From sequence record MW825358.1: a DNA stretch of 64,000 nucleotides; one strand, given 5' to 3'. The notes beneath the pieces were generated by a model. That model worked only from the letters and a program-made list of their open reading frames with translations, did no database searches and was not told where the DNA came from. Below, one piece after another: positions 3,980 through 60,420 of the stretch (position 1 is the first letter of the stretch; every line of letters begins with the position of its first letter). The translations under genes and the position numbers were made by a program.

Positions 3980-4408
3980 ATGTCTGAAGAATCGAACGAC
4001 CAGACCTTCTTTATCCTCCACGCCGAAAACCCTTTCTCCTCTACCTTCGGAAATTATCTAGTCGATTCGATCGAGGCCCCAGATGTGGCCACCGCCCGCG
4101 CCAACACCGGGATCGATCACAGCGAAATCCTGGACGTGTTGGATCTTGAGCAGGCCCATGCGCTCATGCGGGGTAACTACTATCAGTTGCCGGACAACCA
4201 GTTTGTGACCTCTGGCCGTTGGGGCTGGAATTGGGTCACCCACTCGCTGGTGCTGATCGATACGGACTATGAACTGGATGATGAGGTGCTGCTGGCCAAG
4301 GTCAACCAGGAAGGACCTTACGAGGGGGAAATCAACTTCGTATTGAACTTCCCCGACATTGCCGTGTTGCTCACGCAACTGCACATGGAATTGGATCTTC
4401 TCAAATAA
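3980..4408 (+). CDS. hypothetical acidic protein
   Basis: 142-aa ORF in operon context. Confidence 0.65.
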   Translation: MSEESNDQTFFILHAENPFSSTFGNYLVDSIEAPDVATARANTGIDHSEILDVLDLEQAHALMRGNYYQLPDNQFVTSGRWGWNWVTHSLVLIDTDYELDDEVLLAKVNQEGPYEGEINFVLNFPDIAVLLTQLHMELDLLK

Positions 4409-4427
4409 GGCCTATGCTATAGAACAC

Positions 4428-4630
4428 ATGTCACGCATCGGACATGGGCCTGGAAAACCAGTTCTCAAACTCAGTCTTGCCCTCGCGGCTTCGATGTAAC
4501 CCTTCTCTTAAGTGCAGTAACCCGTCGTGAGACGGCCGAAGATCTTCTAAGAGCGCAAGGGAAATGGTGGGCCAGCAACGTCCCCTACCGCATATCTCAG
4601 TCCCCTGCTTTCGGGCAGGGGACTTTATGC
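4428..4630 (+). ncRNA. candidate structured RNA in a 390-nt intergenic region
   Basis: Several stems, including ccctt-ctctta/taagag-aaggg enclosing a ccgtc-GTGA-gacgg GNRA hairpin; closed by a terminator-like hairpin. Confidence 0.3.
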
Positions 4631-4795
4631 CCTTGAGGTGGTAGGATTTGACATCACCACCTTATTGTAAGGATCTACGGTGAGACAGTAGGTTCGTTGA
4701 GTCAACGTCTAGAATTGTGAAGTCAAGAAGGCTGTCGCAAACCATGGCGTGTTGTACCTTTTTTGTAGTTTAACCCAACTTGAGGTTATTTACCC

Positions 4796-5797
4796 ATGAC
4801 TGAATCAGATAATTCCGTTCGCCAGCGCCTCCCGAGGGATTTCCATAGCCACGTCACACGCACGCGCGATGGGCTGTCTTTTCTTACGTCTCCTGTTTTT
4901 CCTGAAAGCCAGGAAACGGTACGCCAGAAATTGCACGCAGTTACTGGCAACGAAGCGATCTTACACACCCTGCCTTTTCAACGTGAGTGGCTGCACTTCG
5001 GTACGTTCGACCCGAGGTACTTTGAAGCATGGTGTATGCAGTACTTAGGGCAAGGCGAAAAGTGTCGAGGCACCGTCTCCTACGCCGATTACGTCGATCA
5101 CTTCCACGTTTTTCCGCGCAATATCACAGGTCACTTTGCAGTAAAGCGCGGTCGAGACCACATCCTGGCGATAATTGAGTTTGCAGGGACATTTGTGGAA
5201 ATCGTGGCAGGACACTGCTATATCTACAAGTCCAGTGTGTATCGGCGAGATCTAAACAGCTGGGACCAACTGGAATCCCTCAAGCCAATTGCCCTTAACG
5301 AGGATCGTTTTGATCTGGTGTTTTGTAAACTCGCCAAACAGCGCACCGGGGTAGGTGAGATCGGCTGGCAAAACGAATATGTGCGCCAGATCAATGTCAC
5401 CCACCATGGGGCCGATATGGATTTGCGTCCTGCCCTGCAAGGAGATCACTTGCGCTGGCTGGAACTTAAAGTGGGGCAATTGATGGAGCAATTGCGACCT
5501 AAAGATGCACAAACAGGCCGTCATCTGCGTGGTCCCTCTTTCAGTTGGGATGTTTTTACCCACGCGTATCTTCTGGCCGGAACAGGTACTGCTGGGTACC
5601 GATTCCGTAGTGGTCCTGAGGCTTACGATTTGGTTTATCCTGCCTGGGAGCAGTTTGAATCTTGGCTTGAGGCCAATGAGGAAGAACTGCGCCACTCGAG
5701 CGAGGAGTTCGTACGTCAGAAAGTGAGCGATAAAATCGTAGAGACCATTGCGCTCCTTGAACAACAGGCGCCGCGCGAGAAAACCCGGCCTCGCTGA
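4796..5797 (+). CDS. hypothetical protein
   Basis: 333-aa ORF with GAGGT SD, followed by a hairpin. Confidence 0.75.
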   Translation: MTESDNSVRQRLPRDFHSHVTRTRDGLSFLTSPVFPESQETVRQKLHAVTGNEAILHTLPFQREWLHFGTFDPRYFEAWCMQYLGQGEKCRGTVSYADYVDHFHVFPRNITGHFAVKRGRDHILAIIEFAGTFVEIVAGHCYIYKSSVYRRDLNSWDQLESLKPIALNEDRFDLVFCKLAKQRTGVGEIGWQNEYVRQINVTHHGADMDLRPALQGDHLRWLELKVGQLMEQLRPKDAQTGRHLRGPSFSWDVFTHAYLLAGTGTAGYRFRSGPEAYDLVYPAWEQFESWLEANEEELRHSSEEFVRQKVSDKIVETIALLEQQAPREKTRPR

Positions 5798-20679: not shown

Positions 20680-23600
20680 GTGTCTCAAATTCCATCTGAT
20701 GTATTGCAATATCTACTCGATGAGTTAAACGAACGCCAAGGGTTAGCACTGACCAAGGCCGACGTCACATTGAGTAGCCCGGCCGCTTATGCGGGAGGGG
20801 TTCGAAACACGGAAGTACGACTGACTGCGGCCACGAACAGTGGCGCTGCGCTCACCGTCTTGATTCATTACACTCGTCTGGACCTTGAGGTCCTGTTTGA
20901 CGAGCTGTCATTGACCTTTGAAGATTTCGGAGCCACCTCCACGCATGGACTGCTGCAGACCCTTGGGGATCTGCGCGGGGTGACGTTGGACCCGGCTGAG
21001 TTTATCGACTCACCTATCGAGCGTCCAGAAGATGCCGATACCTTGCTGGTGACCTTACAGCCACGCCCTGGGTCTTTGACCTTTACAGGCAGCTTACCGG
21101 TCACCTTGAACCTGTTCCCCTCCAATACGGTACCTCTGGCTTCGCTGATCGATCCGGTCAGTCCCAAGCTCATTGCCACCGCAGGGGTCAGTACTACTCA
21201 GGAGCTGGCTGCCTGGCTCAACACCACGTACGATTTGAATATCGAAGTGGCTGAGATTCAAAATGAACCCCTGGTGTCTAGCTACACCGAAGGCTATAAC
21301 CACCAGGTGACCCTGGCGGCCAAGGCCGGTTCTAAGTTCTACACCGGCGATGCTGATGTGACTTACCGCGAAGGCTATCAGTTGATTCGTGGTGTGACCT
21401 TGATTCCCTCCACCGGTGCCTCAGCTTATTCCACTGTTCCGCAGACCCGTTTCCAAGGTTCCACAAGTCGGGGTGTGGAAAACGTCAATACCAATACCGG
21501 TAAGACGGACGTGGTGGTTTCACTGGAGCAACTGAGTGAATCTTTGCCCTTGTGCGAAACCGTTTCGGTGGTAATTGCCTGGTTTGGCGATGATCAGCGC
21601 GCTGGTGTGTGCACGATCACACCACGTCTGGGCGTACAAGGGACAGAGAACCTGACCTTGCGCTATGAACCTGATGACTGGTCAGTGGCCGGTGTCACCC
21701 CTGCCAATGCGCTCAAGACCTCGGTGGTAGCTGGTTCGAACGTCTATGGCTCAACCCCTTCTGATGCTTCGATCATTCAGGTGATCCAACATCTGAAGTC
21801 GCTGGGCAAGCGGGTGGTGTTCTATCCGTTCTTGATGATGGATATCCAGTCCAACAACACCAAGCCCAATCCTTACTGGGATGGGTATCAGTCACCCAAC
21901 GTCTGGCGTGGCCGCGTTTCGTGCTACCCCGCACCGGGTGTGACCATCAAGGGTGTAAGCTCCCCTGATGGAACTGCCGAAGCTGGCAATCAGATTGATA
22001 CCTTCTTCAACAGCGAGTGGGGCTTTAAGCGCTATATCAACCACTATCGGGATCTGTGCGTCCAGGCCGGTGGTGTGGATGCGTTCTTGATTGGCTCTGA
22101 GATGATTGGTATTACGCACGTGCGTAGTGCGGCCAACACCTTTGCCGCAGCTGCCCACTTGAAGGAGCTGGCCGCAGGTGTTAAGGCGGCGATGCCCAAC
22201 TGTAAGGTCTCCTATGCCGCAGACTGGTCTGAGTACCATTCCAAGCAGTACAGCAATGGTGATCTGAAGTTCCCGCTGGATGAGGTGTGGGCTGATCCGA
22301 ACATCGACTTTATCGGCATTGACAATTACTTGCCCATCGCAGATTGCCGAGCCGATCAGGATCCTGCCCTGTGTCATGACATTGACTACCTGAAGAGTCA
22401 CATCGAAGGGGGCGAGTACTACGACTACTACTACATCGACCGGACCGCCGGTACGACTGGTGCGATCACCGATGGTGGGGGTAAACCGTGGGTGTATCGT
22501 CAAAAGGACATCCGTGGTTGGTGGAGTAATCGCCACTACCCGCGCAATGCCTATAATGAAACCAGCACTCCCACGGCGTGGCTGGCCGGCTCCAAGCCGG
22601 TATGGTTTACTGAGTTTGGTTGTGCGGCAGTGGACCGTGGTCCTAACCAGCCTAACGTGTTTTTAGATCCGAAGTCCTTTGAATCTGCTCTGCCTTACTT
22701 TTCCACCGGTGAGGTGGACATGCTGGCACAGCAGGCCTATATCACCGCGATGGTGGAATACTGGACCGAGCACGGCGGGGCGATGATCTCACCTGAGAAC
22801 ATGATTGCCTGGACCTGGGATGCACGACCCTTCCCGCAGTTCCCGCAACTCACCACCGTGTGGGGCGATGGCGGGAACTATCTGGGTGGTCACTGGGTGC
22901 AAGGGCGTTTGCCCGATTCCATTCCGGTGATGACCATTGCCGCAGGCAGTGACGGGGTGGCCGGTAGTCCGGTGAACTACACCTTGACTTTGGATAAGCC
23001 TTCGCTGATTGATCTGATTGTCAATCTGGGTTATGGCGGCACGGCAGTGTCGGGTACGGATTTCACCCCGCGTACGACTGTGACCGTTCCAGCAGGGCAG
23101 ACCAGCTTTAACTTCACTATCGCCACGATCGATACCGGTTTTGGTGAGGATGTCCACACCTTGCGTGTGTCAGTGGTTAAGGGCTTTGGTTACAAGTTGG
23201 GTGTGCCCAAAGATGCCACCTTGTCCATTACCGATAAGCCCTGGCCAGAAGTTCCGCCTGTCCCGTCAATCACCTTGGTGGGCGTGGGTGGTAACCGTAA
23301 CGAGAATGCCGGTACCAAGCAGTTCACGATTGTGCTCTCTGAGCGCACCACGATTGATCTGGTGGTCCCGATTGCCTATAACACCGGTGCTGCGGTTAGC
23401 TCGACCTATGGTGATGACTACACAGGTCCTGCCACCGTCACCGTGCCGGCCAATACGTTGCAGCAGAACTTCAACGTGTCCATCGTCGATGACAATATCT
23501 ACGAAGGGAATGAATCGGCACGCACCACCATCCAGGCAGGTACTGGGTACACGTTAGGTAGTACGGTCTCGGTGGTCTGGACGATTCTGGACAACGATGC

Positions 23601-26600
23601 CAAGCCGACCATGACCATTGCCAAGTTGAGTGATGGTACAGAAGGTAGCACGGGTCCTGGCTTTAGACTGACGGCCAACCGTCTGTCCAAGACCGCCACT
23701 AATGTGATCTTGGCTTACAGCGGTACAGCCACGGCAGGTACGGACTATACGGCACAAACCACAGTCACCTTGCCGGCTATGGCCAACAACGTGGACTTCT
23801 ACCTCTCGGTAGTGGATGACATGGTCAATGAAGGCAATGAGACCGTCATTGTCACGATCCAGCCGGATAATGCCTACACCGTGGGCGGTATGTCAAGTGC
23901 CACAGCCACGATCATTGATCGACACATCAATCCGAAGATTACGATCGCAGCTGCGGCTGCGCAGGTCACCGAAGGCGGTACGTTGAATGTCCGTATCAGT
24001 GCCGATCGTGCTCCGACCTCGGATCTGACTGTACAGCTGCAGTACGGCGGCACTGCGGTGCGGGGAACCGACTACACGCTCAGTTCTTCCACACCAACGG
24101 CAATGGTCCTACCAGCTGGCAGTACTACGTTGGATTTCACCATCACTGCCACGGCAGATCAGCTGGTGGAGCCAGAAGAGTCCATCGTCATCACAGTCGT
24201 CTCGGCCTCCGGTTACGACGTGGGTGATCCGGCTAGTACCACGATCCGCTTGCTGGATAATGATGGTACACCGACCGTCTCCATTGCGCGTAGCGGGCAG
24301 GAGAATGTCAATGAAGGTGACCGTGTAAACTTCACAGTAAGCACCACTAAGGCTTGGTCTACGGCGCGGCAGGTCAACCTGACCTTTGCAGGTACGGCCA
24401 CCAAGGGGACAGACTACACCTTGGTCAATGACTACGTCACAATCCCGGCAGGTCAAACCAGTGTTCAGGCGTATGTGGATATCGTCGATGACACGGCGGT
24501 GGAAGCAGATGAGACAATCATCTTGGGCATTGCGACCAATGCGGCCTACACGGTCAGTTCCACCAATGGCTCGATTCAGTACACGATCCTCAATACCGAT
24601 TCCTACCAGCGTCCGGTGGCTTCAATCACCAACCTCAGTAGCCAGTCGGTGGATGAGTCTCGCACTGAACCGCTGACCATGACGGTGGGCATTGGCTCTG
24701 TCCAAGGCACGGATACGACGGTCTATATCGCCTACAGTGGCACAGCGACTAAGGGTACCGATTACACGGCACCTGATTCGGTGGTGGTCCCGGCAGGACA
24801 GATCTCTGTCACTGCACAGATCCAGATCATCAACGATACGACCTACGAGTCCAGCGAGACGATCATCATCAATGTTCAGGCCAACGCCGCATATGACATT
24901 GCAGGTTCGCAAACGCCCATCACGATCACGATCGTGGATGATGACGGTCCTACGCAGGCGACCTTCAGTAGCTCCACGTATAAGGCGCCCACGCAGACCT
25001 TGTCTGACTCGAACCGTCGCACGACAGCCAACACCGATGTGGCAGGCTTTGTCTTGACAGACACTGTCAAGCGCACTGGTAAGTACTACGTAGAGTTGAC
25101 GTATATGGCCCAAGCCACAACCTCCTCCACCTCGTGTGCGGCAGGTATTGTGGTGGGTGCACCGGTGAATCTGACAGCTTACCTGGGCTCGCACAGCAAC
25201 GCCTACGGTACCTGGGCAGAAGGTACGGGTATCGACCGTCGTTGTAGCTACAACAACGCCTCGGCGACCAATGCCACCACAGGCAACGGTGCCCCGGCGG
25301 TGGGTCAGGTCTTCCGTATTGCGGTGGACATCGACGCCGGTCGAGTGTGGTTGGGTCGCTTGGGTAGTTCGGCTTGGTTAGGCGGTGGTGATCCTGCCAC
25401 TAACACCAGTCCGACCTACACCTTCACACCTAACTCAGTGGTGCGCTTTGGTGCTAACCCGCGTGGTGTGGACGGTTCGGTCTCGATTCGCGCCTACAAC
25501 GCATGGGTGTATGCGGCACCGGCAGGTTTTGGTATCTGGGACAATGTCTCGCAAGAGAATTGGCCGCGTGTGTCTACGGTCAACTACGGTTCGGTCCAGG
25601 AAGGCAATCCGATGACCTTCCAGCTGACGCTGGACAAGGCTGCTGCCGCAGACTTGCCGGTGAACTTGAGTTACGGTGGCACGGCAGTGAGGGGTACAGA
25701 TTACACCGCACCGACCTCACGCACTGTCACGGCAGGTAACTTGACCCAGCAATGGTCCATCAATACAGTCCCAGACAACAGCGCCTCCACCAACAAGACC
25801 TTGACTGTGACGGTCAACCCCGGCCCTGGTTACATCGTCGGTTCGCCGGCCACCGGTTCAGGTACGATCACCAACAACGCTGCGGAAAATCCGTTTGTCA
25901 ACACGGTGGCTCCGGCAGTGTCGGGTAATACGACCCCAGGCAGTACGTTGACAGTGTCTAACGGTACTTGGACAGGCGGTACGATCACCAGCTACGGGTA
26001 TGAGTGGTACCGCAATGGTTTCTTAACTGCGGTGAAAACACAGACCTACGTGATCGCTGCTAATGACGATATCGATACGGAGTTCTTCGCTCGGGTCTAT
26101 GCGAAGAGCGCTCGTCAGAACGTCCCGGCACAGTCTAACACGGTCAAGGTGACCGCACCGCCGGCTTCACTGCCGATGACGGCCACCTTTGTGGGCGCTG
26201 ACAACACGGATGTGACCACTCACGACTCGCGTCTGTCGTATATGGGCGATGTCTCCCCGATCTCGCTGATTATCGAGAATAATCAGATGGCCCCGGGTAA
26301 TGATGTCGGCGGTGCACAGTGTGTCTTCTTCAACAATGCGAAGATGACCCAAGGTGCACGCTCGTCTAAGATCACCATCGGTGGGACGGACAACAGCAGC
26401 TTCTTCTTGATCACGCTGATGACCGATGGCACGATGAGCCGTTACATCCAGTGGTATGGTACCAGCGGCTTTGCGGCGATCTACTGCCGCACCGGTGGTG
26501 AGGAAATGGAAGTGCCCAGCTCGGCACACTACCCGACCATTGTGGCCGGTGACGTGCTGGAGTTGAGTATCAATGCGGCCAATGATCAGCTGACCTTTAA

Positions 26601-26745
26601 GGTCAATGACGTGGTGGCTTGGACTGGTGCAATTCCGTCTAATATGGTTCCGGTGGGCGAGTACAGTGGCGCTGGTTACTACAGCGCTTCTCCGTACGAA
26701 GCTGCTCGAATTGTGGACATCACCATTAACGGTACGTTGAAGTAA
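20680..26745 (+). CDS. giant virion fibre/appendage protein: anchor domain + GTA-type TIM barrel + Calx-beta repeats + SPRY + Ig + lectin-like
   Basis: N-terminal domain shared with 26824 and the 49-52 kb paralogs; GTA TIM motifs (GSTPSDAS, YPFLMMD, FLIGSEM, YAADWSEY, IGIDNYLP, WFTEFGC, PNVFLDPKS.ES); ~7 GTDYT-type Calx-beta units; GKYYVEL SPRY motif. Confidence 0.85.
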   Translation: MSQIPSDVLQYLLDELNERQGLALTKADVTLSSPAAYAGGVRNTEVRLTAATNSGAALTVLIHYTRLDLEVLFDELSLTFEDFGATSTHGLLQTLGDLRGVTLDPAEFIDSPIERPEDADTLLVTLQPRPGSLTFTGSLPVTLNLFPSNTVPLASLIDPVSPKLIATAGVSTTQELAAWLNTTYDLNIEVAEIQNEPLVSSYTEGYNHQVTLAAKAGSKFYTGDADVTYREGYQLIRGVTLIPSTGASAYSTVPQTRFQGSTSRGVENVNTNTGKTDVVVSLEQLSESLPLCETVSVVIAWFGDDQRAGVCTITPRLGVQGTENLTLRYEPDDWSVAGVTPANALKTSVVAGSNVYGSTPSDASIIQVIQHLKSLGKRVVFYPFLMMDIQSNNTKPNPYWDGYQSPNVWRGRVSCYPAPGVTIKGVSSPDGTAEAGNQIDTFFNSEWGFKRYINHYRDLCVQAGGVDAFLIGSEMIGITHVRSAANTFAAAAHLKELAAGVKAAMPNCKVSYAADWSEYHSKQYSNGDLKFPLDEVWADPNIDFIGIDNYLPIADCRADQDPALCHDIDYLKSHIEGGEYYDYYYIDRTAGTTGAITDGGGKPWVYRQKDIRGWWSNRHYPRNAYNETSTPTAWLAGSKPVWFTEFGCAAVDRGPNQPNVFLDPKSFESALPYFSTGEVDMLAQQAYITAMVEYWTEHGGAMISPENMIAWTWDARPFPQFPQLTTVWGDGGNYLGGHWVQGRLPDSIPVMTIAAGSDGVAGSPVNYTLTLDKPSLIDLIVNLGYGGTAVSGTDFTPRTTVTVPAGQTSFNFTIATIDTGFGEDVHTLRVSVVKGFGYKLGVPKDATLSITDKPWPEVPPVPSITLVGVGGNRNENAGTKQFTIVLSERTTIDLVVPIAYNTGAAVSSTYGDDYTGPATVTVPANTLQQNFNVSIVDDNIYEGNESARTTIQAGTGYTLGSTVSVVWTILDNDAKPTMTIAKLSDGTEGSTGPGFRLTANRLSKTATNVILAYSGTATAGTDYTAQTTVTLPAMANNVDFYLSVVDDMVNEGNETVIVTIQPDNAYTVGGMSSATATIIDRHINPKITIAAAAAQVTEGGTLNVRISADRAPTSDLTVQLQYGGTAVRGTDYTLSSSTPTAMVLPAGSTTLDFTITATADQLVEPEESIVITVVSASGYDVGDPASTTIRLLDNDGTPTVSIARSGQENVNEGDRVNFTVSTTKAWSTARQVNLTFAGTATKGTDYTLVNDYVTIPAGQTSVQAYVDIVDDTAVEADETIILGIATNAAYTVSSTNGSIQYTILNTDSYQRPVASITNLSSQSVDESRTEPLTMTVGIGSVQGTDTTVYIAYSGTATKGTDYTAPDSVVVPAGQISVTAQIQIINDTTYESSETIIINVQANAAYDIAGSQTPITITIVDDDGPTQATFSSSTYKAPTQTLSDSNRRTTANTDVAGFVLTDTVKRTGKYYVELTYMAQATTSSTSCAAGIVVGAPVNLTAYLGSHSNAYGTWAEGTGIDRRCSYNNASATNATTGNGAPAVGQVFRIAVDIDAGRVWLGRLGSSAWLGGGDPATNTSPTYTFTPNSVVRFGANPRGVDGSVSIRAYNAWVYAAPAGFGIWDNVSQENWPRVSTVNYGSVQEGNPMTFQLTLDKAAAADLPVNLSYGGTAVRGTDYTAPTSRTVTAGNLTQQWSINTVPDNSASTNKTLTVTVNPGPGYIVGSPATGSGTITNNAAENPFVNTVAPAVSGNTTPGSTLTVSNGTWTGGTITSYGYEWYRNGFLTAVKTQTYVIAANDDIDTEFFARVYAKSARQNVPAQSNTVKVTAPPASLPMTATFVGADNTDVTTHDSRLSYMGDVSPISLIIENNQMAPGNDVGGAQCVFFNNAKMTQGARSSKITIGGTDNSSFFLITLMTDGTMSRYIQWYGTSGFAAIYCRTGGEEMEVPSSAHYPTIVAGDVLELSINAANDQLTFKVNDVVAWTGAIPSNMVPVGEYSGAGYYSASPYEAARIVDITINGTLK

Positions 26746-26823: not shown

Positions 26824-27336
26824 GTGTCTAACCTACCATCTGATGTGATACAGACTTTGTTGGACGGGATCAACCGCGAGTGTGCCTTGAGCCTGACCAA
26901 AGATCAGGTGGTGTTTGGCACACCCGAGCCTTCCACCCAACAAGGTCGTAATACCAAAGTCCGGGTTGAAGCTGCCTCGGTACATCTTGTCATCTCAGCT
27001 TACTACTACCGTTTGGAACTGTCGAGGTTGCTGAGCGATATCAGCAGGACCTTTCCAGATGAAGGCCAGGCCAATACTCTGGATTTAATTCCTCAGATTG
27101 CGGCCCGTCGTCAATTGAGTTTCAATGTTGATGACTTTGTTTCCACTCCGATCGAGCGTACCGAAGGTCAGCCCACGTTGGTGACCCTACAAGCCCGCGC
27201 GGATTCTTTGACGTTGTTAGGTGCAGTCGAGATTACGCTGGGCGCAGTTAACACGGTTCCTGATAATGCTTTGCTGACACGAGAAGGCGACCCCATCTAT
27301 ACGCGGGAAGGCGACTTCCTATTTGTTTCGGAGTGA
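26824..27336 (+). CDS. stand-alone anchor/adaptor protein (paralog family)
   Basis: AGGAG SD, GTG start; same domain as the N-terminus of 20680; ends LLTREGDPIYTREGDFLFVSE. Confidence 0.8.
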   Translation: MSNLPSDVIQTLLDGINRECALSLTKDQVVFGTPEPSTQQGRNTKVRVEAASVHLVISAYYYRLELSRLLSDISRTFPDEGQANTLDLIPQIAARRQLSFNVDDFVSTPIERTEGQPTLVTLQARADSLTLLGAVEITLGAVNTVPDNALLTREGDPIYTREGDFLFVSE

Positions 27337-27339
27337 TGT

Positions 27340-30300
27340 ATGCCACACGTACACGAGCTACCGTCTGTTTCACCCCAGACCGTAGCCGATTTGCGCAATG
27401 TCACAGGGATTGTGCTGCTGGAGCAAACCGTACAGCAAGTACAAACGGATTTGGGTGAAGCCCAGGATCTGGCCCAAGCAGCATCAACTGCTGCCTCTAC
27501 GGCCACCACTACGGCTAACACCGCCAAGACCACGGCCGATACGGCCAAGACCACCGCTGATACCGCAGCCGGCAATGCCAGTACTGCTTTACAAGCTGCC
27601 AACGTAGCGGTTGCCGCAGCTGCTGAGGCCAGCACTGCGGTGGAGGAGGCTCAAGATCAGATCGATACTGCTGTGGCCGATGCAGCAACAGCTAAGACCT
27701 TGGCGACCTCAGCCAATACGGCGGCCAGCGCTGCTGACACCAAAGCCACCAATGCAGGCACAGCTGCCAGTAATGCGCAGACCACAGCCACTGCAGCGCA
27801 GACCGCAGCAGGTAACGCACAGACGGCGGCCAACACTGCTCAAGCAAAGGCCGATGCTGCCGATACCAAGGCCAATAACCTGCGTACCGATTTGGATTCT
27901 CTGACCGATACGGTCCAGGCGATCCAAGATCAGATCGGTGGTGTCAACCAAGTCCCGGTGGCCACACCCATCACCATTGATGTGGATGAGGACACAGTCA
28001 ACTACCAAGGTAGCGTGTTCGACCACGTAGTGGACCCTGACGGTGATGACATGGTGGTGGTGGAATCCACCTACAACAGCACCAAGTTCAATGCCGGCAC
28101 CCAGTTCAATACTGTCTACGGCACGATGCTGGTGGCAGTCAACGGTAACTACACTTTCACCCCCAACGCCACCGCGCAAGCTTTGAATGACGGAGAGACC
28201 GGTACGGTTGCCTTTGCCATTCTCGTGCGTGATGCCCGCGGTGGTACGGCGACGTGGAACCTCACCATTCGTGTGATCGGTTCAACGGATGAGGCCGGCG
28301 GTGGAGATGATGATAACACCACCTTTGATGCCCTGTATGACCCCAGCTTCAAACTGATTGAAAATCAGAACTTCTACTCGCGCCCGACAATGTCCAAGCC
28401 GAGTAAGATGACCAGCTACACACAGCCGAGCTATACCGATCCGGTGTTTGGAACCAAGATCTTTGGTCTGACCCGCGTCAATGATACCTCGGACAATATC
28501 ACCAACTTGCGCCACGTCTATTCGCGTCAAACGGCGATCAATGCCGATAACACGCGCTCGATCGTGCGTGCCGGTAACGGTTGGTGGCATTTGTATAACC
28601 TGCAAACCGGTCAGCGTATTTTGGGTGGACGTACCCAAACGCCAGGCTTTGGTGCGCTGGTGGATTTCATCAACGAATGCGAATGCGTCTGGCATCCGAC
28701 CAACCCCAAGAAGCTGTGGCGTACCGGTAACCAAGGTGCGGGGTGCATCTGGTATGAATACGACATCGATACGATGACCACCACGGTCCTGTTTGACCTC
28801 AACCCGCTGCTGCAAGCGCTGGGTGGGGCTTGGGCCAATGCTGGGCGTGCCTGGTTCAAGGGCGAAGGTCGTCCTTCGAACGATGGTCGCTGGTGGGGCT
28901 TCCAGGTGGAAACGGCCAGCTATGGAATGATCGGCTTGATCATGTACGATCGCCAGACCAACACCATCGTCGGCAGTGCACTGACCACCAACCGTCCCGA
29001 CCACGTTTCAACCTCACCGCTGGGTAACTATATCGTGCCATCTTGGTACGGTGGTACGACCGAAACGCTGGCGTCCTCGGCCACCCGTCCGATGAATGAA
29101 GCCAACGGTGCACGTGCTTACTCGCGTGACTTCTCTTCCTTTACGCAGCTGTCCTCGTTGGGTGAGCACTCAGACTTGGCCATCGATGCGCAAGGTAATG
29201 AAGTGTTTGTCTCGGTGTCCTACCGTGGCGGCACCTCAGGTCAAGAACCTGACGTGGCTGACGGTGGCATCTACTATCGCCGGATGGATAACGGTGTGGC
29301 CTACTCGCTGCCGGGTAATGCCTACCAAGACTCCTCTGACGGTGGTGTGCACTTGTCAGGCCTTGCCACCAAGAAGCCTGGTTGGGCGGTGGTATCCTGG
29401 TATGGCGGTACGCCTAAGACGTGGAAGGACGGTGTGGTCTATGCGGTGGAGCTGACCCCGGATAACCCCAAGACCTTACGTATCTGTCACCACCAGACGG
29501 TGGCCCAAGGTGCTGAGGCGTATATCGCCGAATCCCACGCAGTGCCCTCGCCTGATATGTCCATGATCCTGTTTGCCTCCAACTATGGTGGCAGCGTGGT
29601 GGAAGACTACTACGTGGGTCTGCCTTCGTGGGCCTTTGGTGTGGCAGGCGCAGGTCGCCCGCCGGTAAACCAAACCCTGCCGGCAGTCTCAGGACAAGTC
29701 ACCCCCAATGCGGTGTTGACCTGTACGGCGGGCATGTGGTCCGGTGTGGGGATTACCTACAGCTACCAATGGTACCGTGACTCTGGTACGATCATCAGTG
29801 GTCAGACCACCAACAGCTTCACCATCCCTTCAGGGGCAGCGGCAGGTACGCAGTACTACTGCCGTGTGACAGCCACCAATGCCACCGATACGGTTTACGC
29901 TGAGTCCAACAAGATCACCGTGCAGGTTCCTTCTGCGCCGGTCAACACGGCCAAGCCCACCATCACCGGTGGTTCGGCAGTGGGTAGCTTGCTCACAGCG
30001 CAGCCGGGTACGTGGTCGGGTCTGCCGACGCCGGACTTTACCTATGCTTGGTATCGTAACGGGACAGCGCTGGGTGTCACCACGCGCACCTATACGGCCA
30101 ATGATCTGGGTGACTACACGGTCCAAGTCCGGGCCGAGAACACCCAAGGTTTTGCAACGGAGATGTCCACGGTCAAGACGATCGTGGCCGCCGCAGATCC
30201 CAAGGCTGCGGTGGGTTCGCCGGTGAACACCACTAATACATGGCAGTCCTCCGGCAGTATTGCCGTACCGTCAGTGGCAGTGGGTGATTCGATTCTGTTG

Positions 30301-30858
30301 GTGGTGAGCCTGGATGAGGGCAGTGGTGATGGTAACTTGAACTCGATCACGGCCACCGTGCTCGGCAAGCCCTTGAACCTGCTCTACTCCACTCCGTTGA
30401 TCACTCTGTCCTCTGGTCGTATGGTGCGTCAGCACTACTACGTGGCAGATAAGGTGACCGCGGCCGGTACAGCCACGATCAATGTGACCTTTGAGGCCAA
30501 CACGCATTACGCTATGCAGGCCCAGCGCTTCACCGGTGGTATTGCCACGGTGGATGTCACAGCGCCGGGTGGCTTTAATGCCACAGCGTTTGCCACACCA
30601 CATCCGACCGGTACGGTCAGTGCGACCATCGCCAACTCCGTTGAGGTCATCAGCTTGGTCGGCGCCACGGACATGTCCAATGCGGCATTGACTTTGCCCT
30701 CTGGCTTTACCTCGATGGGTGCAGACAACGTGGGTCCGTTGGTGGCGATCACTGGCTATCGCGTGCGCACCACAATCGGCAACATCGGCGGTACGATTAC
30801 CTCGATGAATGGCGGTTATGGTTCGGGCTGGGCAGCTTCTGCCTTGAACTTGTACTAA
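27340..30858 (+). CDS. fibre protein: Ala/Thr coiled coil + VCBS/cadherin-like Ig + propeller-like domain + Ig repeats
   Basis: A/T-rich heptads, GTMLVAVNGNYTFTP (VCBS-like), Trp-rich ~440-aa domain, two PVN..P..SG..LT...G.WSG..Y.WYR Ig-like repeats. Confidence 0.75.
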   Translation: MPHVHELPSVSPQTVADLRNVTGIVLLEQTVQQVQTDLGEAQDLAQAASTAASTATTTANTAKTTADTAKTTADTAAGNASTALQAANVAVAAAAEASTAVEEAQDQIDTAVADAATAKTLATSANTAASAADTKATNAGTAASNAQTTATAAQTAAGNAQTAANTAQAKADAADTKANNLRTDLDSLTDTVQAIQDQIGGVNQVPVATPITIDVDEDTVNYQGSVFDHVVDPDGDDMVVVESTYNSTKFNAGTQFNTVYGTMLVAVNGNYTFTPNATAQALNDGETGTVAFAILVRDARGGTATWNLTIRVIGSTDEAGGGDDDNTTFDALYDPSFKLIENQNFYSRPTMSKPSKMTSYTQPSYTDPVFGTKIFGLTRVNDTSDNITNLRHVYSRQTAINADNTRSIVRAGNGWWHLYNLQTGQRILGGRTQTPGFGALVDFINECECVWHPTNPKKLWRTGNQGAGCIWYEYDIDTMTTTVLFDLNPLLQALGGAWANAGRAWFKGEGRPSNDGRWWGFQVETASYGMIGLIMYDRQTNTIVGSALTTNRPDHVSTSPLGNYIVPSWYGGTTETLASSATRPMNEANGARAYSRDFSSFTQLSSLGEHSDLAIDAQGNEVFVSVSYRGGTSGQEPDVADGGIYYRRMDNGVAYSLPGNAYQDSSDGGVHLSGLATKKPGWAVVSWYGGTPKTWKDGVVYAVELTPDNPKTLRICHHQTVAQGAEAYIAESHAVPSPDMSMILFASNYGGSVVEDYYVGLPSWAFGVAGAGRPPVNQTLPAVSGQVTPNAVLTCTAGMWSGVGITYSYQWYRDSGTIISGQTTNSFTIPSGAAAGTQYYCRVTATNATDTVYAESNKITVQVPSAPVNTAKPTITGGSAVGSLLTAQPGTWSGLPTPDFTYAWYRNGTALGVTTRTYTANDLGDYTVQVRAENTQGFATEMSTVKTIVAAADPKAAVGSPVNTTNTWQSSGSIAVPSVAVGDSILLVVSLDEGSGDGNLNSITATVLGKPLNLLYSTPLITLSSGRMVRQHYYVADKVTAAGTATINVTFEANTHYAMQAQRFTGGIATVDVTAPGGFNATAFATPHPTGTVSATIANSVEVISLVGATDMSNAALTLPSGFTSMGADNVGPLVAITGYRVRTTIGNIGGTITSMNGGYGSGWAASALNLY

Positions 30859-49309: not shown

Positions 49310-49813
49310 TTATTGATAAGGATACCCTAAACCCTGAAGGTAAACCGAGGGTTCAGGATCTTCTGGCATATCGGCACTTAAGGTCAATGTCACGCTTCCA
49401 AACAAACCTAAGGAACCAGATTTAGCCGTCAAGGTAAAAGCCGGCTCCTCACCGCTGCGATCGATACTTGAATCTTCCACATCGGCACTGGTGATGTATC
49501 CGCCCAGACGTATGCTGAGTTTAGCAAGTAAGTCATGGACTGAGGTCTCACCGCCATCAGCAAAGATCTTGTTGCGATATTCAAACAGCTTGGTCAGCGA
49601 TAAGCGATTGTAGTTGATGTTCAGCGACAGATCTGTCCCAATGGCCGTCAGTCCCAGGCGGCTATTGCGCTGGGAACTGGTCATGTCGATGATCGATGGA
49701 TTCACCAAAATGGGCGCATCCCAGGTGACATCCGTTTTAGTCAGTGACAAACCCTGTTGGGCATTAATGTCATCCAGCAGGCTTTGCCGGACGTCGAGCA
49801 AATCATTGGACAT
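49310..49813 (-). CDS. virion structural paralog (anchor domain) ending in VYLQGLGYPYQ
   Basis: GGAG SD before ATG 49813; RNS..YNRLSL..SLGLFG family motifs. Confidence 0.8.
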   Translation of the reverse strand: MSNDLLDVRQSLLDDINAQQGLSLTKTDVTWDAPILVNPSIIDMTSSQRNSRLGLTAIGTDLSLNINYNRLSLTKLFEYRNKIFADGGETSVHDLLAKLSIRLGGYITSADVEDSSIDRSGEEPAFTLTAKSGSLGLFGSVTLTLSADMPEDPEPSVYLQGLGYPYQ

Positions 49814-49985: not shown

Positions 49986-50468
49986 TTAGCCCTCAGGCTC
50001 TCCGCCACTGCTTTCACCGAAGCTGATTTCGATCTCTCCAAAGACATAGAGAGAATCTGGATCTGCTTCCAGTGACATCGGACCTTCCACCACGATCGCA
50101 TCGATGATGTCCTCAGCCACCAAACGGGTGCCCAGGCGTGCATTGATCTGATTCAGCATGGAGCTAAGCATCACCCCATCACCAGGATAGGGAAACTCGG
50201 TGGAACGCAGGTTGAAGAGTTTAGCCATGGACAGGCGGTTGTAAACCACCGTAACGTCCACTGCCGGACCATTGCCATCGGCAGGTCGGGTCAGCTGTAC
50301 GGAAGAATTACGCTTGGCCGGATCACTGAAATCCACCACAGTGGCATCCAGCAAAGCCGGCGGTGCAAAGGTGACCTCATCTGGATCCAGACTCAGACCG
50401 GCCTTGGCATTGGCACGGGCAACCAGGAACTCGGCTACCGATGCTGCGGTATTGATGTCATCGGACAT
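49986..50468 (-). CDS. virion structural paralog (anchor domain)
   Basis: RNSSV..YNRLSM..SLYVFG. Confidence 0.8.
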   Translation of the reverse strand: MSDDINTAASVAEFLVARANAKAGLSLDPDEVTFAPPALLDATVVDFSDPAKRNSSVQLTRPADGNGPAVDVTVVYNRLSMAKLFNLRSTEFPYPGDGVMLSSMLNQINARLGTRLVAEDIIDAIVVEGPMSLEADPDSLYVFGEIEISFGESSGGEPEG

Positions 50469-50557: not shown

Positions 50558-51049
50558 TTAACCAGCTTCCGGATCGGGCTTGGTCATGGTCATCTCAGCC
50601 GCACCAAACAGCCCCAGCGATTCGGGCTTGGCGGTGAGCACGACCGTATCGGTGGTCGCATTGACCGGCTCCAGGGCCACATCTTCCAGGTCAGAGCCCG
50701 TCAGATCCAGCTTCAGCTTCTCGGCAATTTCCTCGAGCAGGTCGTAGGTGGAAACCTGGGAACCGTCGCCTTCAAGGTCATCACCCATCACGCTCACCAG
50801 CTGCGCCAGCGACAGACGGTTGTAATGCAGGGTGTAGGACACTTCCACCTCATCATCACCCACGGCGGTGATGGCAATGCGCGAGTTGCGCGCAGTGGGG
50901 TTGGTCAGGTCAATCGTATCTTCGTCATACAGCTCAGGCTCGCCGAAGGTCAGCTGGTTCACCGTGTAGACGGTGTCCAGATTCTGAGCGGCCAGCTGCT
51001 CATTGAGCAACTCGGTCAGCTGCTCGGGAAAAGACTTGGGGTTAGACAT
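50558..51049 (-). CDS. virion structural paralog (anchor domain)
   Basis: RNSRI..YNRLSL..TYDLL..SLGLFG. Confidence 0.8.
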   Translation of the reverse strand: MSNPKSFPEQLTELLNEQLAAQNLDTVYTVNQLTFGEPELYDEDTIDLTNPTARNSRIAITAVGDDEVEVSYTLHYNRLSLAQLVSVMGDDLEGDGSQVSTYDLLEEIAEKLKLDLTGSDLEDVALEPVNATTDTVVLTAKPESLGLFGAAEMTMTKPDPEAG

Positions 51050-51078: not shown

Positions 51079-51555
51079 TCAAGGACCGCTCAAGGTCAGA
51101 TTGATCTGACCAAACAGCAGCAAGGAGGCAGGATCTGCCACCAGCATTACGGTCAACGGATACGTGCCGCCTTCGATCTGGTGTCCCACAATGTCCTCTT
51201 CCCTTACGGTGAATCCGAACTTGGTGGTCAACACCGGCAACAGGTCGTACGTATGAGTTATATCGCCAGCAATAGTCGTGCTACCGCTTTCAAATAGCCC
51301 CGTCAAAGACAGGCGATTAAACCACAATGTCGTGGCGAACTCATATGGTTCGCCTGGCGCGTTGGTGATTTCCACTTTGCTATTGCGCGAAGGCAATGCA
51401 GGAGGTGCAGGATCGGTAATATCTACCACGGTAGGATCGACTAAGACCGGAACACCAAATGACACACGACTTAGGTCCAGGTGGGTTTTGTACTGAGCAT
51501 TGAGCGCATCGAGCAACTGCTGCTGAGGCGTCAATACAGGATCAGGAACAGGCAT
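51079..51555 (-). CDS. virion structural paralog (anchor domain)
   Basis: RNSKV..FNRLSL..TYDLL..SLLLFG. Confidence 0.8.
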   Translation of the reverse strand: MPVPDPVLTPQQQLLDALNAQYKTHLDLSRVSFGVPVLVDPTVVDITDPAPPALPSRNSKVEITNAPGEPYEFATTLWFNRLSLTGLFESGSTTIAGDITHTYDLLPVLTTKFGFTVREEDIVGHQIEGGTYPLTVMLVADPASLLLFGQINLTLSGP

Positions 51556-51637: not shown

Positions 51638-52729
51638 TTACTCAGCCAGACCCTTGACCTTGGCGGTGAACGCCAGGGTGAGGGTGTTGCTGGCATCGGC
51701 CAGATCCACCGCCTTGAACTCGATCTGGAAATCTCCGTAGGGAGAACCGGCCGGATTCAAGGTCAGCGAACCGAACTTGCGCTTGACGTGGTTGATATAC
51801 AGCACATCGGTGTACAGGCTCTGATCGGCATTGGTGGCCTCTTCGTGATGCTGTTCGATCTGGTTGGCCGTATCGATCAGATAAAGACGACCGAACTTGC
51901 GGGTCAGGGCCAGATTGATCACGCCCCCACCTTGGGCAGCGGTGATCTTCAAGGACACCGCATAGCGATCGGTCAGACGCTTGCTGTTGGTCTTCTTCAG
52001 CAAGGCCGCGCCAAAGGGGATGTTCCACTCGCCTTGATCGGAGATATCCAGCACCACCTCATCATTGCGCGAACCCACCGCGTAGTCCACCTTACCCAGG
52101 CGTGCACCGACAAACAACTCCACCTCACCATTGGAGGCGACAAACAGCTTCTCAGCCGATTGGTTGTTGGCCAGCAGCGTGCCGTGCTCCGGCGAGCGCA
52201 GGATCTGGCTAGGGGTGGCATTGGGAGTGATGACCGGCTCGGTGATGAAGCTATCGTCCACCGCCTTAGCTTCGAGCAGGTCAATGGAGAACTGACCGGT
52301 AAAGCGCAGGGACATCGGGTTGGCCTTGAGCACCACCGCACGTGGGTAGTCGCCCGTGGGAAGGTTGGCCTGGACCAGATCGGTCGACTCAAACACTACA
52401 CGGGCCTCAGTGGCCAGCGGCGCGAGCAGATCGGCCACCGTGGTGTAGTTGTTATTGACAATCTCAATGCTGCGATTGGCAAACAGACGGGCCAGGTCAA
52501 AGCGGTGGTAATGGTACTCCACCGTCACCGGTGTGGGTTGGCCGTCGTCGGGGGTGACGGTGTGGGTCACTTCGATGTCAGTGTTATACTTCTCATCGGC
52601 AGACACACTCGGGGCGCCGATCACGACATCGCTGGCTTCAAAGCTGGTGGCATTAGCGGCGTTGATCAGGTCGACCACAAACTGCTCGCCCGAGGTTGTC
52701 AGGTCAGCGGTCTTGTTGGAATCGGACAT
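51638..52729 (-). CDS. anchor domain + ~210-aa passenger domain
   Basis: YNT..YHRFDL..TVADLL..SLRFTG followed by an unrelated C-terminal region; start 52729 preferred. Confidence 0.8.
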   Translation of the reverse strand: MSDSNKTADLTTSGEQFVVDLINAANATSFEASDVVIGAPSVSADEKYNTDIEVTHTVTPDDGQPTPVTVEYHYHRFDLARLFANRSIEIVNNNYTTVADLLAPLATEARVVFESTDLVQANLPTGDYPRAVVLKANPMSLRFTGQFSIDLLEAKAVDDSFITEPVITPNATPSQILRSPEHGTLLANNQSAEKLFVASNGEVELFVGARLGKVDYAVGSRNDEVVLDISDQGEWNIPFGAALLKKTNSKRLTDRYAVSLKITAAQGGGVINLALTRKFGRLYLIDTANQIEQHHEEATNADQSLYTDVLYINHVKRKFGSLTLNPAGSPYGDFQIEFKAVDLADASNTLTLAFTAKVKGLAE

Positions 52730-57903: not shown

Positions 57904-58152
57904 GTTTTAAAATTTGCCGTAAAACAATGCCTAATGATTTGGTAGTATTTTCTACCGGGGTTGAGCCCGAGCTGTCTATGAATACTTACTTGAGTACGTA
58001 TTTACGCACTTGCGCACTCCCCTCATTAGAGAGTGGTGGTCTAACGACTGCTCGCCCCGGTGGGCGGCAAGCCTAGGACCCCATCATTAGTTTAGCGGTG
58101 GGGAATAGGCTACTACTGCTGCCCTTACAAAACACACTCAAGGAACAAAGAA

Positions 58153-60420
58153 ATGGCTCTTCGTCTGAAAGCTGCCAAGTCGGCCCCGCTGTCCCAGCTG
58201 GCTGCCAACCTGCGCACCACCATCCTGGCCTCGGGTTCTGACCTGATTTCGGCCGGCACCACCAAGAACCTGCTGGCCTCGATGGAATCCATCGGTCAGA
58301 TGGAAGCTGCAAACCTGCAGAACGAGTTTGAGGCTGTTCGCGATAACCTGCGTTCGCAGATCCAGGGCATCAAGGGTCTGTCCCGTTCGTTCGGTCTGGA
58401 GTCGGAAGGCTCGGCTGAAGAGCGCGAAGAGGCCCAGGCCCGCTTCGAGACCGCGCTGGACGCTGGCGCGATGGCTGCCATGGCTGCCGGTAATCCGGAA
58501 GCCTACGCGCAGGCCGCTTACCTGGGTCAGGCCCAGGCCGCCCCGGGCGTGACCATCGTCGACACGATGGCCTCCGACAGCGCCGCTGCCATGGACTACC
58601 GTCCGGCCGTGGCCATGGAAGCCTTCAACGACAAGGAACTGCGCGATCACCTGCCGTTCTCGATCCTGTTCAACATCTTCGCTTCGCGTCAGGACGACTT
58701 CTCCGAGATGTTCTTCCCGACGACCGTTGTCGCCCCGGACCAGGCTGGTCTGGACGTCACCGTTGCTCGCATGCAGGTCTTCAATGAAGTCCGTCACGCC
58801 GCTTCGGGTGCCAAGGTTGATTTCGGCAAGCGCAACCTGATCGACGCCGCTGTCGACTACACCATCCTGGCCGACGAGCACACCCGTCTGATCCCGGTCG
58901 TGCAGCCGGACGGTTCGAGCGACGACAAGTTCGTTGCCGACACCATCGTTGCCCCCTTCATGGAGAAGGTTGGTAAGTACGAAGTCCCGACCAGCGCTCT
59001 GGCCCTGGACAAGGACATCGACCTGATCGGTATTTCGCAGTACCAGCCGCTGCTGGGCGCTGGCGTGATCGATCACTCCGACGATGTGGACGCTCGCGTC
59101 TCCCTCGACAAGCTGTACCTCCAGGCCGGTTCCGGCGTGGCCGTGGCGTTCAACGTCAACCGTCTGGCCCGTAGCCAGTTCAACAAGACCGTGGAAGGCA
59201 ACAGCCGTCTGCTGGGTCTGCAGTTCACCTCGACCGATCTGGTCATCGACAAGGACAGCAAGGCGATCGACGGCTCGGCCGTGACCGCGTTCGCTGGTAT
59301 CGTCTCGGGCAAGTACACCGTGCGTCTGTCGGTGAACGTCTCGGGTGAGCTGAACGTTGAGTTCGGTAACGTCAAGGTGTGGGCTGCCTCGGTTTCCGTG
59401 GCTTCCATCCAGGACGAGAACGGCAACAGCGTTCCGACCTCCGGTGGCGCTGGCGCCGCTGTGGTCACCGCTCTGGCCGGTCTGAAGATCGTCGGTTACA
59501 CCCTGCGTGCCAACCGCACCAACGCCAACCGTCGTACCCGTGGCCACCTGCTGGACACCGTGTATGAAACCCAGCGTTACACCATCCCGCTCGGCTCGCC
59601 GCTGTCGATCACCTCGCCGGTCACCGGTGACGGTTCGCGCGACGCTGCTGACCAGAAGGCCCTGATCGCTGCCGCTCGTATGCGCAACAGCAACAACGCG
59701 GTCACCGCGCTGTTCGCCATTGCCGACCAGCTGCGTGAAGCGACCCGTGGTCCGAAGCTGCCGGCGGGTGAAGTGTCCGGTGTGGGCGGCCTGGGCCGCT
59801 TCCTGGTCGATCCGTTCTTCGAAGAGCACGATCTGGATCTGGTCGAGAGCATCAACTCGATCAAGTCGCAGGACCGCGCCTACGACATCTCGGCCGTGCT
59901 GGTTTCGGCGATCCGTGATATCGCCTACCGCATGTACCAGAGCACCAAGATCCAGCCTGCGATCGATGCGCTGACCGGCGTTGCCGGCGAAGCCCCGGTC
60001 CTGCTGGTGGGTACCGACCAGGTCCTGATCCGTCACCTGCTGGTGAACGGTGACAGCCGTACCTTCGGCACCGTGTTCGACAAGGCCATCGTCAAGGCTT
60101 CCGTTGACCGTCGCGTCTACAACAAGATCTTCATCTCGTTGAGCCGTGCTGGTGCGGAAGGTCCGGACCCGCTGACCTTCGGTACCCATGGTTGGATGTC
60201 CGAGCTGATCGCGACCATGCCGATCAGCCGCAACGGCCAGACCTCGAAGGAAGCGACTGTCCAGCCGCGTACCCTGCACATCAACAACATGCCGGTCCTG
60301 GCGATCATCAACGTCAAGGGTCTGTCGAAGGTTCTGGTCGATAAGACCGCGACCCCGGCTCTGACCAGCGCTGGTGTGGCCAACGTGTACCTGGACGGCC
60401 TGAAGTACCCGACCCCGTAA
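58153..60420 (+). CDS. major capsid protein precursor (phiKZ gp120-like)
   Basis: 755 aa, AMEAFNDKELR..ASRQDDFSEMFFPT motif of phiKZ-like capsid proteins; strongest codon bias in the window; dnaB-capsid-RNAP synteny; two downstream hairpins. Confidence 0.88.
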   Translation: MALRLKAAKSAPLSQLAANLRTTILASGSDLISAGTTKNLLASMESIGQMEAANLQNEFEAVRDNLRSQIQGIKGLSRSFGLESEGSAEEREEAQARFETALDAGAMAAMAAGNPEAYAQAAYLGQAQAAPGVTIVDTMASDSAAAMDYRPAVAMEAFNDKELRDHLPFSILFNIFASRQDDFSEMFFPTTVVAPDQAGLDVTVARMQVFNEVRHAASGAKVDFGKRNLIDAAVDYTILADEHTRLIPVVQPDGSSDDKFVADTIVAPFMEKVGKYEVPTSALALDKDIDLIGISQYQPLLGAGVIDHSDDVDARVSLDKLYLQAGSGVAVAFNVNRLARSQFNKTVEGNSRLLGLQFTSTDLVIDKDSKAIDGSAVTAFAGIVSGKYTVRLSVNVSGELNVEFGNVKVWAASVSVASIQDENGNSVPTSGGAGAAVVTALAGLKIVGYTLRANRTNANRRTRGHLLDTVYETQRYTIPLGSPLSITSPVTGDGSRDAADQKALIAAARMRNSNNAVTALFAIADQLREATRGPKLPAGEVSGVGGLGRFLVDPFFEEHDLDLVESINSIKSQDRAYDISAVLVSAIRDIAYRMYQSTKIQPAIDALTGVAGEAPVLLVGTDQVLIRHLLVNGDSRTFGTVFDKAIVKASVDRRVYNKIFISLSRAGAEGPDPLTFGTHGWMSELIATMPISRNGQTSKEATVQPRTLHINNMPVLAIINVKGLSKVLVDKTATPALTSAGVANVYLDGLKYPTP

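Follow-up and report, generated by a model that had tools for sequence, protein, structure and literature searches.

Locus and shared C-terminal peptide

The stretch of DNA analysed here (the window, 64,000 nucleotides) comprises bases 186001-250000 of record MW825358.1, the genome of Xanthomonas phage vB_XciM_LucasX, as identified by the open reading frame of its major capsid protein (MCP), which is 100% identical. LucasX is a phiKZ-like jumbo phage, and its nearest sequenced relative is Xanthomonas phage RTH11, with an MCP identity of 76%. Among the 70 annotated proteins in the window, we focused on LUCX_273, a small protein of the DUF7941 family, and LUCX_285, the MCP, which end in nearly the same nine residues. 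We consider it moderately probable that this peptide is a docking plug of the DUF7941 fibre modules of the Chimalliviridae, and that copies of it on the tails of the MCP and of a baseplate wedge protein anchor such modules to the capsid and the baseplate. The features concerned are listed below, with "plug" and "socket" denoting the proposed docking peptide and the domain that would receive it.

49310..49813, minus strand: LUCX_273, 167 amino acids, a stand-alone DUF7941 N-terminal domain followed by a short linker and the plug
49370..49798, minus strand: globular N-terminal part of LUCX_273 (residues 6-148), which would be the socket, supported by AlphaFold2, Foldseek and profile searches
49319..49345, minus strand: plug motif VYLQGLGYP of LUCX_273 (residues 157-165), in a tail predicted to be disordered
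58153..60420, plus strand: LUCX_285, phiKZ-type HK97-fold MCP, 755 amino acids, assigned by PF25620 and PDB matches
60367..60417, plus strand: C-terminal extension of the MCP, 17 residues (739-755), past the end of the Goslar MCP in the alignment to 11bt_Ar
60385..60411, plus strand: plug motif VYLDGLKYP of the MCP (residues 745-753), two residues before the stop

LUCX_273 terminates in PEPS-VYLQGLGYP-YQ-stop and the MCP in AN-VYLDGLKYP-TP-stop. Seven of the nine residues are identical, each nonapeptide lies two residues ahead of its stop codon, and BLASTP detected no further similarity between the two proteins. The first-pass annotation of the window had reported this likeness in two otherwise unrelated proteins, and its coordinates proved exact; its count of identities, the equal stop distance and the difference in codons were confirmed. 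Across the nine codons, 16 of 27 nucleotides are equal and the same codon is used at one of the seven identical residues, so the peptide is not a recent DNA copy between the two genes. The LUCX_273 tail uses codons ending in A or T (GTT, CTT, GGT, TTA, TAT, CCT), while the MCP encodes the same residues with codons ending in G or C, a contrast consistent with different expression levels or with a different origin of the small gene's tail. In-frame ATG codons lie upstream of the annotated starts of LUCX_273 (49864 rather than 49813) and of LUCX_286 (60557 rather than 60659); these alternative starts leave the C-terminal finding unaffected.

The motif is short, and many proteins had been scanned by eye in the first-pass annotation, both of which favour the explanation that the two C-termini are alike by chance. 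Among the 70 window proteins, however, LUCX_273 and the MCP form the only pair with at least 7/9 identical residues at equal distance from the stop, and when the C-terminal 60 residues were shuffled, any such pair arose in 1 of 2000 shuffles. In addition, we scanned six-frame pieces of the LucasX genome (455,232 positions) with a weight matrix trained solely on the tail repeats of the baseplate wedge proteins of LucasX and RTH11. Outside its training set, this matrix scored the C-terminus of the MCP highest (19.2 bits) and that of LUCX_273 next (16.5 bits), with the third match, at 13.5 bits, falling in a non-coding frame. A second matrix, trained solely on 22 DUF7941 linker motifs of other phages, placed the MCP end first genome-wide in LucasX, at 19.7 bits. 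These top ranks from independent matrices, together with the shuffles and with the conservation and selection of the MCP copy described below, make a chance likeness scarcely credible. A looser pattern, L..L.YP, had about eight background matches in the six-frame translation, including DNA ligase and the interior of the LUCX_179 domain, and these were treated as chance.

The DUF7941 domain and its linker motif

LUCX_273 matches Pfam family PF25613 (DUF7941) at 55 bits against a cut-off of 27, and its window paralogs LUCX_277 and LUCX_244 score 60.7 and 96.9 bits, respectively. Across LucasX, Pfam matches to DUF7941 comprise LUCX_273, 277, 244, 174, 125, 301 and 176. The shared domain of approximately 150 residues is the N-terminal half of DUF7941 and also matches phrog_1037 and phrog_2935; it is common to seven window proteins (LUCX_244, 245 and 273-277) and present in about 18 copies in the whole genome. 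An AlphaFold2 model of LUCX_273 built from a 34-sequence alignment had a mean pLDDT of 86, with residues 6-148 at 84-97 and residues 150-167 at 41-56, indicating that the linker is predicted to be disordered. This model was used in place of a single-sequence prediction, which had a pLDDT of 40 and was discarded.

Searching the PDB with the model in Foldseek returned a single significant match, 9xqd_0 (E 3.7e-5, probability 1.00, TM 0.52/0.57). This chain is the N-terminal domain of phiKZ gp127, located at the outer peripheral baseplate, and among relatives of the LUCX_273 domain it alone has a solved structure (PDB 9xqd). A profile search of the PDB likewise recovered PHIKZ127 at E 2e-9, while phmmer with LUCX_273 against PDB sequences gave no match, indicating that a profile is needed. 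In a word-indexed protein search, LUCX_273 alone retrieved only itself, and a 25-sequence alignment retrieved mostly proteins of the Goslar gp23 type. We had also considered a fibre anchor of the phiKZ gp131 type, for which the LucasX domain would have to resemble the N-termini of gp131 and gp133-135. The window paralogs match PF25613 and no gp131 family, and since the profile and fold searches of the PDB, in which the presence of gp131 N-terminal chains is unconfirmed, returned gp127 only, this candidate was rejected.

We then surveyed 104 distinct DUF7941 domains followed by at least 12 residues, drawn from 80 viral loci and from reference phages, for a pattern consisting of a hydrophobic residue, any residue, Gly and Leu/Phe/Met, followed by an aromatic residue one position later or Pro two positions later. 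The pattern was found after 25 of the 104 domains, LUCX_273 included, always starting 10-19 residues past the domain, compared with 1.9% of control windows (p = 2.5e-20). Examples are NMLAGLNYI, TVMTGLNFP and KELDGLKFF in Goslar gp31, gp33 and gp34, NILTGLKYP in Erwinia phage Phobos gp142 and TKLDGLVYP in SPN3US gp141; SPN3US gp160 ends in NGELDGFV, and the tail of the Goslar gp23 family reads NVADGFVKP followed by six residues. The fixed-distance motif as a feature of DUF7941 is defined in the present analysis rather than in the literature, and a docking plug definable as a sequence motif appears undescribed.

Judged by its sequence and position, the peptide in LUCX_273 is the canonical DUF7941 linker motif. 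This bears out the first-pass annotation in taking the peptide for a genuine module, as do its conservation and its top matrix ranks. Four small LucasX proteins (LUCX_273, 174, 125 and 301) consist of domain, plug and stop, and LUCX_273, with its domain, linker and plug, would form a minimal chain unit and is the counterpart of Goslar gp23 and SPN3US gp160. Other members consist of the domain only (LUCX_274-276, 245, 175 and 292) and in this respect resemble phiKZ gp126.

Conservation and selection of the capsid protein tail

LUCX_285 carries a precomputed PF25620 assignment and matches PDB entries 11bt (E 5e-111), 36za, 8y6v and 8bfl, so that the phiKZ-type MCP sequence is recognisable throughout its mature region. 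Its alignment to 11bt_Ar stops at query residue 738, corresponding to position 739 in a chain of 740, and the Goslar MCP has no motif-bearing tail. Of 120 MCP homologues, 55 have the motif in their C-terminal tail, without exception 2-7 residues from the end, and its occurrence falls with distance from LucasX: 24 of 25 close, 31 of 58 intermediate and none of 37 distant homologues carry it. When the MCPs of six distinct close relatives were compared pairwise, the nine motif codons showed 17 synonymous and 10 non-synonymous differences, the latter confined to two variable positions, compared with 26 synonymous and 76 non-synonymous differences in the 12 codons immediately before the motif. On this sequence evidence, the MCP motif is a conserved, selected C-terminal extension in a clade of Xanthomonas and Stenotrophomonas phages, and it appears not to have been described.

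A similar MCP tail is found in a second clade, in which the MCP of Salmonella phage SA002 ends in ...AVLDGLNAQPKP and that of Erwinia phage pEa_SNUABM_37 in ...AVLDGLNTQPAP. In one lineage, represented by loci L108 and L149, the MCP has the C-terminus ...NPYLDGHTYVPPAP; NVLDGHVYTPP and NILDGHNYVAP occur in the wedge tail. Here, a His in both the MCP tail and two wedge repeats takes the place of the Leu or Phe of other lineages, a substitution present in none of 80 other wedge tails. This shared variant argues for one common reader of both tails.

A 713-amino-acid open frame runs antisense to the MCP gene (window 58138-60279, minus strand). Its translation is of low complexity, with much Arg, Gly and Asp, and in all likelihood the frame is no gene but arises from GC-rich codon usage.

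Tandem motif copies in the baseplate wedge protein

Outside the window, LUCX_291 (record positions 255237-257981, 914 amino acids) is the homologue of the baseplate wedge protein known as gp128 in phiKZ and gp35 in Goslar. It matches 9xqs_C PHIKZ128 at E 2.9e-134 over query residues 5-628 only, and phrog_3222 at E 1e-218. Beyond this matched helical core of about 640 residues lies a repeat-bearing tail with approximately 10 tandem copies of the motif (for example CVLDDLEYP, AVLDDLVYP and VMLDELNYP), ending in ...SDGLPYPS, and the RTH11 wedge tail is similar. Applied to 73 distinct wedge tails, the linker matrix gave 48 matches compared with 2.5 expected from shuffling. The number of copies per tail ranges from one, near the end, to about 13, and Goslar gp35 has diverged copies in some 200 residues that are missing from the modelled chain. 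The presence of the motif in wedge C-terminal tails appears to be undescribed as well.

Neither the phiKZ gp128 tail nor the phiKZ MCP end carries the motif. Phage phiKZ-like wedge tails (loci L014, L038, L055, L058, L061 and L091) are devoid of the plug and have another conserved C-terminal pattern, for example ...DNYLGQYKNSDDPNYPDM and ...GGLGQYNNSTDPNWPNLP.

In nearly all loci, the wedge gene is followed by DUF7941 genes, and two loci show closer ties between them. In L110 (10001-12697; metagenome contig Ga0213828_1000043), a DUF7941 N-terminal domain is fused to the C-terminus of the wedge protein (residues 778-885, 36.8 bits) in place of the plug repeats. The seven neighbouring DUF7941 proteins of this locus all have a linker motif of the F type, TDLNGFMYP and TDLDGFGYP among them. 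The wedge protein of L105 (1606-4236) and the DUF7941 protein next to it (4237-4830) agree at 23 of their last 26 residues, and 63 of 81 bases are identical, including a long exact run, which suggests that a tail module was recently copied between the adjoining genes.

Accessibility and processing of the capsid protein tail

In phiKZ hexamers, the MCP C-terminal arm (residues 728-747) forms a central six-helix bundle round a 9 Å pore, and in pentamers it binds gp244, a protein of the outer surface (PMC11297242). The latter is a precedent for an MCP arm that binds an external capsid protein, differing from the arrangement proposed for LucasX in that gp244 has another fold, occurs at vertices only and shows no shared motif (PMC11297242). 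In the Goslar MCP, the C-terminal arms make up a six-stranded barrel in the middle of the hexon, and Goslar MCP carrying a C-terminal GFP localises like capsids. By homology with phiKZ and Goslar, the LucasX arm would lie at the capsomer centre, where it would be reachable from outside. In one MCP homologue of 829 amino acids (P0105), a PKD domain (residues 757-823) is fused after the C-terminal arm, and the MCPs of Xoo-sp14, SPN3US and homologues P0045-P0062 have glycine-rich ends; the MCP C-terminus thus seems to be a preferred site at which lineages display elements of their own. The maturation cleavages quoted in the cited papers all follow Glu. Since the last 55 or so residues of the LucasX MCP contain no Glu, removal of the tail by the prohead protease is unlikely. 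Taken together, these observations suggest that the tail is likely to be exposed and uncleaved.

An inward orientation would follow if the DUF7941 proteins were internal head proteins that take part in ejection, tethered under the shell by the MCP tail. SPN3US paralog family B belongs to DUF7941 by Pfam. Its members were detected in particles that were filled with DNA but had no tail, gp141 and gp160 each exceeding 300 copies per capsid (PMC5105663, PMC5694885). The authors suspected them of being internal proteins and labelled them "head ejection?" (PMC5105663, PMC5694885). However, the passengers of DUF7941 proteins are of a kind that acts at the host surface, phiKZ gp127 is external on the baseplate, and both the contact of the phiKZ MCP arm with an outer protein and the PKD fusion point outward. 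We regard an internal location as very unlikely.

The arm structures also bear on the explanation that the MCP motif is an intrinsic capsid element, either a seal or stabiliser of the hexamer centre or a site for a decoration protein, and that its likeness to the linker motif and the wedge repeats is convergence on a similar short strand-turn peptide that has a different partner. The helix bundle of phiKZ, the barrel of Goslar and the binding of gp244 to the pentamer arm would all suit such a role, as would the fact that the motif is clade-specific in MCPs but family-wide in DUF7941. Yet with two matrices trained without any MCP, the MCP end takes first or second place genome-wide among matches outside the training sets, and the His variant is common to the MCP and wedge tails of one lineage. 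In addition, the motif follows a variable linker, past the part that aligns with the structured Goslar arm, as is typical of a displayed peptide and not of a packed element. An intrinsic role is therefore unlikely in our view, if still to be reckoned with.

A docking model for DUF7941 modules

We favour a model in which the motif is the docking part of the linker, and in which the copies on the MCP, with its tail outside, and on the wedge protein would be bound by the same domain. The socket would be the DUF7941 N-terminal domain, with the plug carried on the disordered linker 10-19 residues downstream. The MCP, with one copy on the 17-residue extension of its C-terminal arm, and LUCX_291, with about 10 copies, would act as plug-only initiators, two carriers that themselves have no DUF7941 domain and whose C-terminal tails would be bound by the N-terminal domains of DUF7941 proteins. 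Members with both socket and plug (LUCX_273, 174, 125 and 301) would extend chains, and plug-less modules, including most of those with passengers, would end them, with LUCX_176 as an exception. Modules would attach at the baseplate and, in the LucasX clade, at the capsid surface.

This scheme resembles donor-strand or peptide-in-groove polymerisation, as in chaperone-usher pili, in which a short peptide of one subunit occupies a site on the next, with dedicated initiators and terminators. The resemblance is a mechanistic analogy only, involving no homology and no chaperone or usher.

DUF7941 homologues are virion proteins in Goslar and SPN3US, and head-to-tail assembly was recently proposed for Goslar, with the DUF7941 linker docking on the next N-terminal domain to form filaments (Basu et al., bioRxiv 10.64898/2026.04.21.720040). 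Such docking between protomers, linker to N-terminal domain, is thus a proposal drawn from AlphaFold 3 models of head-to-tail dimers and from gp22 filaments seen in negative stain (bioRxiv 10.64898/2026.04.21.720040). The same preprint estimates that a virion has about 2,140 copies of gp23, which consists of domain and linker only, and about 580 of gp22, proposes a "fiber cloud" at the peripheral baseplate, and names no motif, MCP or wedge tail (bioRxiv 10.64898/2026.04.21.720040). Goslar gp22 and gp23 share with the LucasX proteins the PF25613 domain and a disordered linker, LUCX_273 being of the gp23 type, and some members carry glycan-binding or hydrolytic passengers. In contrast to the Goslar anchor, which lies at the peripheral baseplate only, LucasX adds the MCP and the wedge protein as plug-only carriers. 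The plug-and-socket chain put forward in the first-pass annotation had therefore largely been described, the two having been reached independently, and the polymerisation idea behind its suggestion of an undescribed system was published in April 2026; the motif copies on the MCP and wedge tails are what appears new.

In phiKZ, gp126 is bound to the linker and C-terminal domain of gp127 (Nat Commun 2026, PMC13250141). As a domain-only protein, gp126 may show how LUCX_274-276 and LUCX_245 would act as chain ends. The phiKZ system differs in having only about three family members and in that the tip of the gp139 spoke holds gp127. The SPN3US family shares the linker motif as well as the Pfam family, including a gp160 that ends in the motif, and is head-associated by experiment; it differs in that its glycine-rich MCP ends carry no motif.

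All carriers of the motif are virion proteins and carry it in disordered tails, and its binding to the domain is itself a proposal. These points would also suit a signal read by a third factor, such as an assembly chaperone or a sorting factor that guides virion proteins to where they are assembled, in place of the DUF7941 domain. Among roughly 100 or more virion proteins of LucasX, however, only three classes carry the motif, and a sorting signal is a poor explanation for ten tandem copies in a single tail. Moreover, the N-terminal domain is where the linker docks in the published predictions, gp22 forms filaments alone, and the wedge-DUF7941 fusion points to direct association. We consider a third-factor signal distinctly improbable.

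Several observations weigh against the docking model. Most chimallivirus MCPs, including those of Goslar, phiKZ and SPN3US, have no motif, and hence capsid anchoring is not a general mode and the head association in SPN3US needs another route. In phiKZ, gp127 is located on the outer baseplate beside gp139 although the phage has no plug-bearing wedge tail. The positional counterparts of LUCX_273 in RTH11 and in the metagenomic loci L095 and L096 have no plug, and a search for a plug-bearing counterpart in RTH11, L095, L096, L097 and L098 found none. The motif flavours of wedge tails and DUF7941 linkers show no clean co-variation in most lineages. The His variant represents one evolutionary event. 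A further viral scan aimed at its lineage yielded only a 99% identical copy, so the co-variation comes from one lineage, and a scan of bacterial genome contigs yielded no members of the relevant clades. Steric hindrance may keep six tails that meet at the centre of a hexamer from binding six domains. Finally, the LucasX paper presents micrographs without visible fibres and no virion proteome, and the Goslar preprint specifies no docking residues within the linker (bioRxiv 10.64898/2026.04.21.720040).

Under the docking model, it is safest to suppose that any displayed plug can be bound by a module, which in LucasX would include plugs on the capsid. For the baseplate, attachment is supported by phiKZ gp127, which is seen there, and by the motif in the wedge tails. 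We hold more tentatively, as a possibility somewhat short of even, that there is a clade-wide coat, in which each of approximately 1,600 capsid subunits and the multi-plug tails of six wedges would nucleate DUF7941 chains with glycan-binding or hydrolytic passengers, with an independent origin in the SA002-like clade. The first-pass annotation had suggested that the giant fibre proteins would be head fibres, in chains started by the capsid tail, extended by LUCX_273 and capped by passenger-bearing members. The LucasX gene set fits this division of labour except for LUCX_176, which carries both plug and passenger. Occurrence on the head has independent experimental support from the SPN3US proteins in tailless heads, but an exclusive head location is unsupported: given the motif copies of LUCX_291 and the baseplate position of phiKZ gp127, there is no need to take the giant fibre proteins for head fibres.

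Accounts differ on how the very large virion paralog families of giant nucleus-forming phages are located and attached. The baseplate placement in Goslar has to assume micron-long filaments from six sites, while SPN3US genetics points to tailless heads. A motif on the MCP and the wedge protein would provide a concrete and checkable address code for module attachment, predicting which phages have decorated capsids, and would supply a sequence rule for annotating initiators, extenders and terminators in hundreds of jumbo phage genomes. If true, the coat would explain both the head location of the 20-member SPN3US family and the approximately 2,700 copies per virion in Goslar. The question also bears on the first steps by which such phages locate a host, among them phages under consideration for controlling plant-pathogenic Xanthomonas.

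Other family members and fibre proteins of LucasX

The remaining DUF7941 proteins in the window and a further fibre-like protein are listed below.

49986..50468, minus strand: LUCX_274, DUF7941 N-terminal domain only, a putative socket without a plug
50558..51049, minus strand: LUCX_275, DUF7941 N-terminal domain only
51079..51555, minus strand: LUCX_276, DUF7941 N-terminal domain only
51638..52729, minus strand: LUCX_277, 363 amino acids, DUF7941 N-terminal domain (by its Pfam match) with a C-terminal passenger and no plug motif
20680..26745, plus strand: LUCX_244, 2021 amino acids, DUF7941 domain (approximately residues 1-154) with GTA TIM-barrel-like and Calx-beta passengers assigned by Pfam, no plug
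26824..27336, plus strand: LUCX_245, 170 amino acids, DUF7941 N-terminal domain only
27340..30858, plus strand: LUCX_246, 1172 amino acids, fibre-like with Ig-like domains and no DUF7941, assigned by PHROG tail-fibre families and Pfam Ig_2

Passengers in LucasX comprise a GTA TIM-barrel-like glycoside hydrolase, Calx-beta and esterase-like types, and in Goslar carbohydrate-binding and leucine-rich-repeat types. LUCX_176 (L011:7221-9710, outside the window) combines a DUF7941 domain and the plug LELAGFLPA with a passenger resembling an alpha/beta-hydrolase or esterase. It is the single LucasX member seen with both plug and passenger, and a candidate surface-glycan deacetylase module by its sequence. 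LUCX_246 shares repeats with LUCX_244, as detected by BLASTP. Only 3 bases separate the end of LUCX_245 from the start of LUCX_246, and the two genes look like a split domain-plus-passenger protein or a two-gene fibre.

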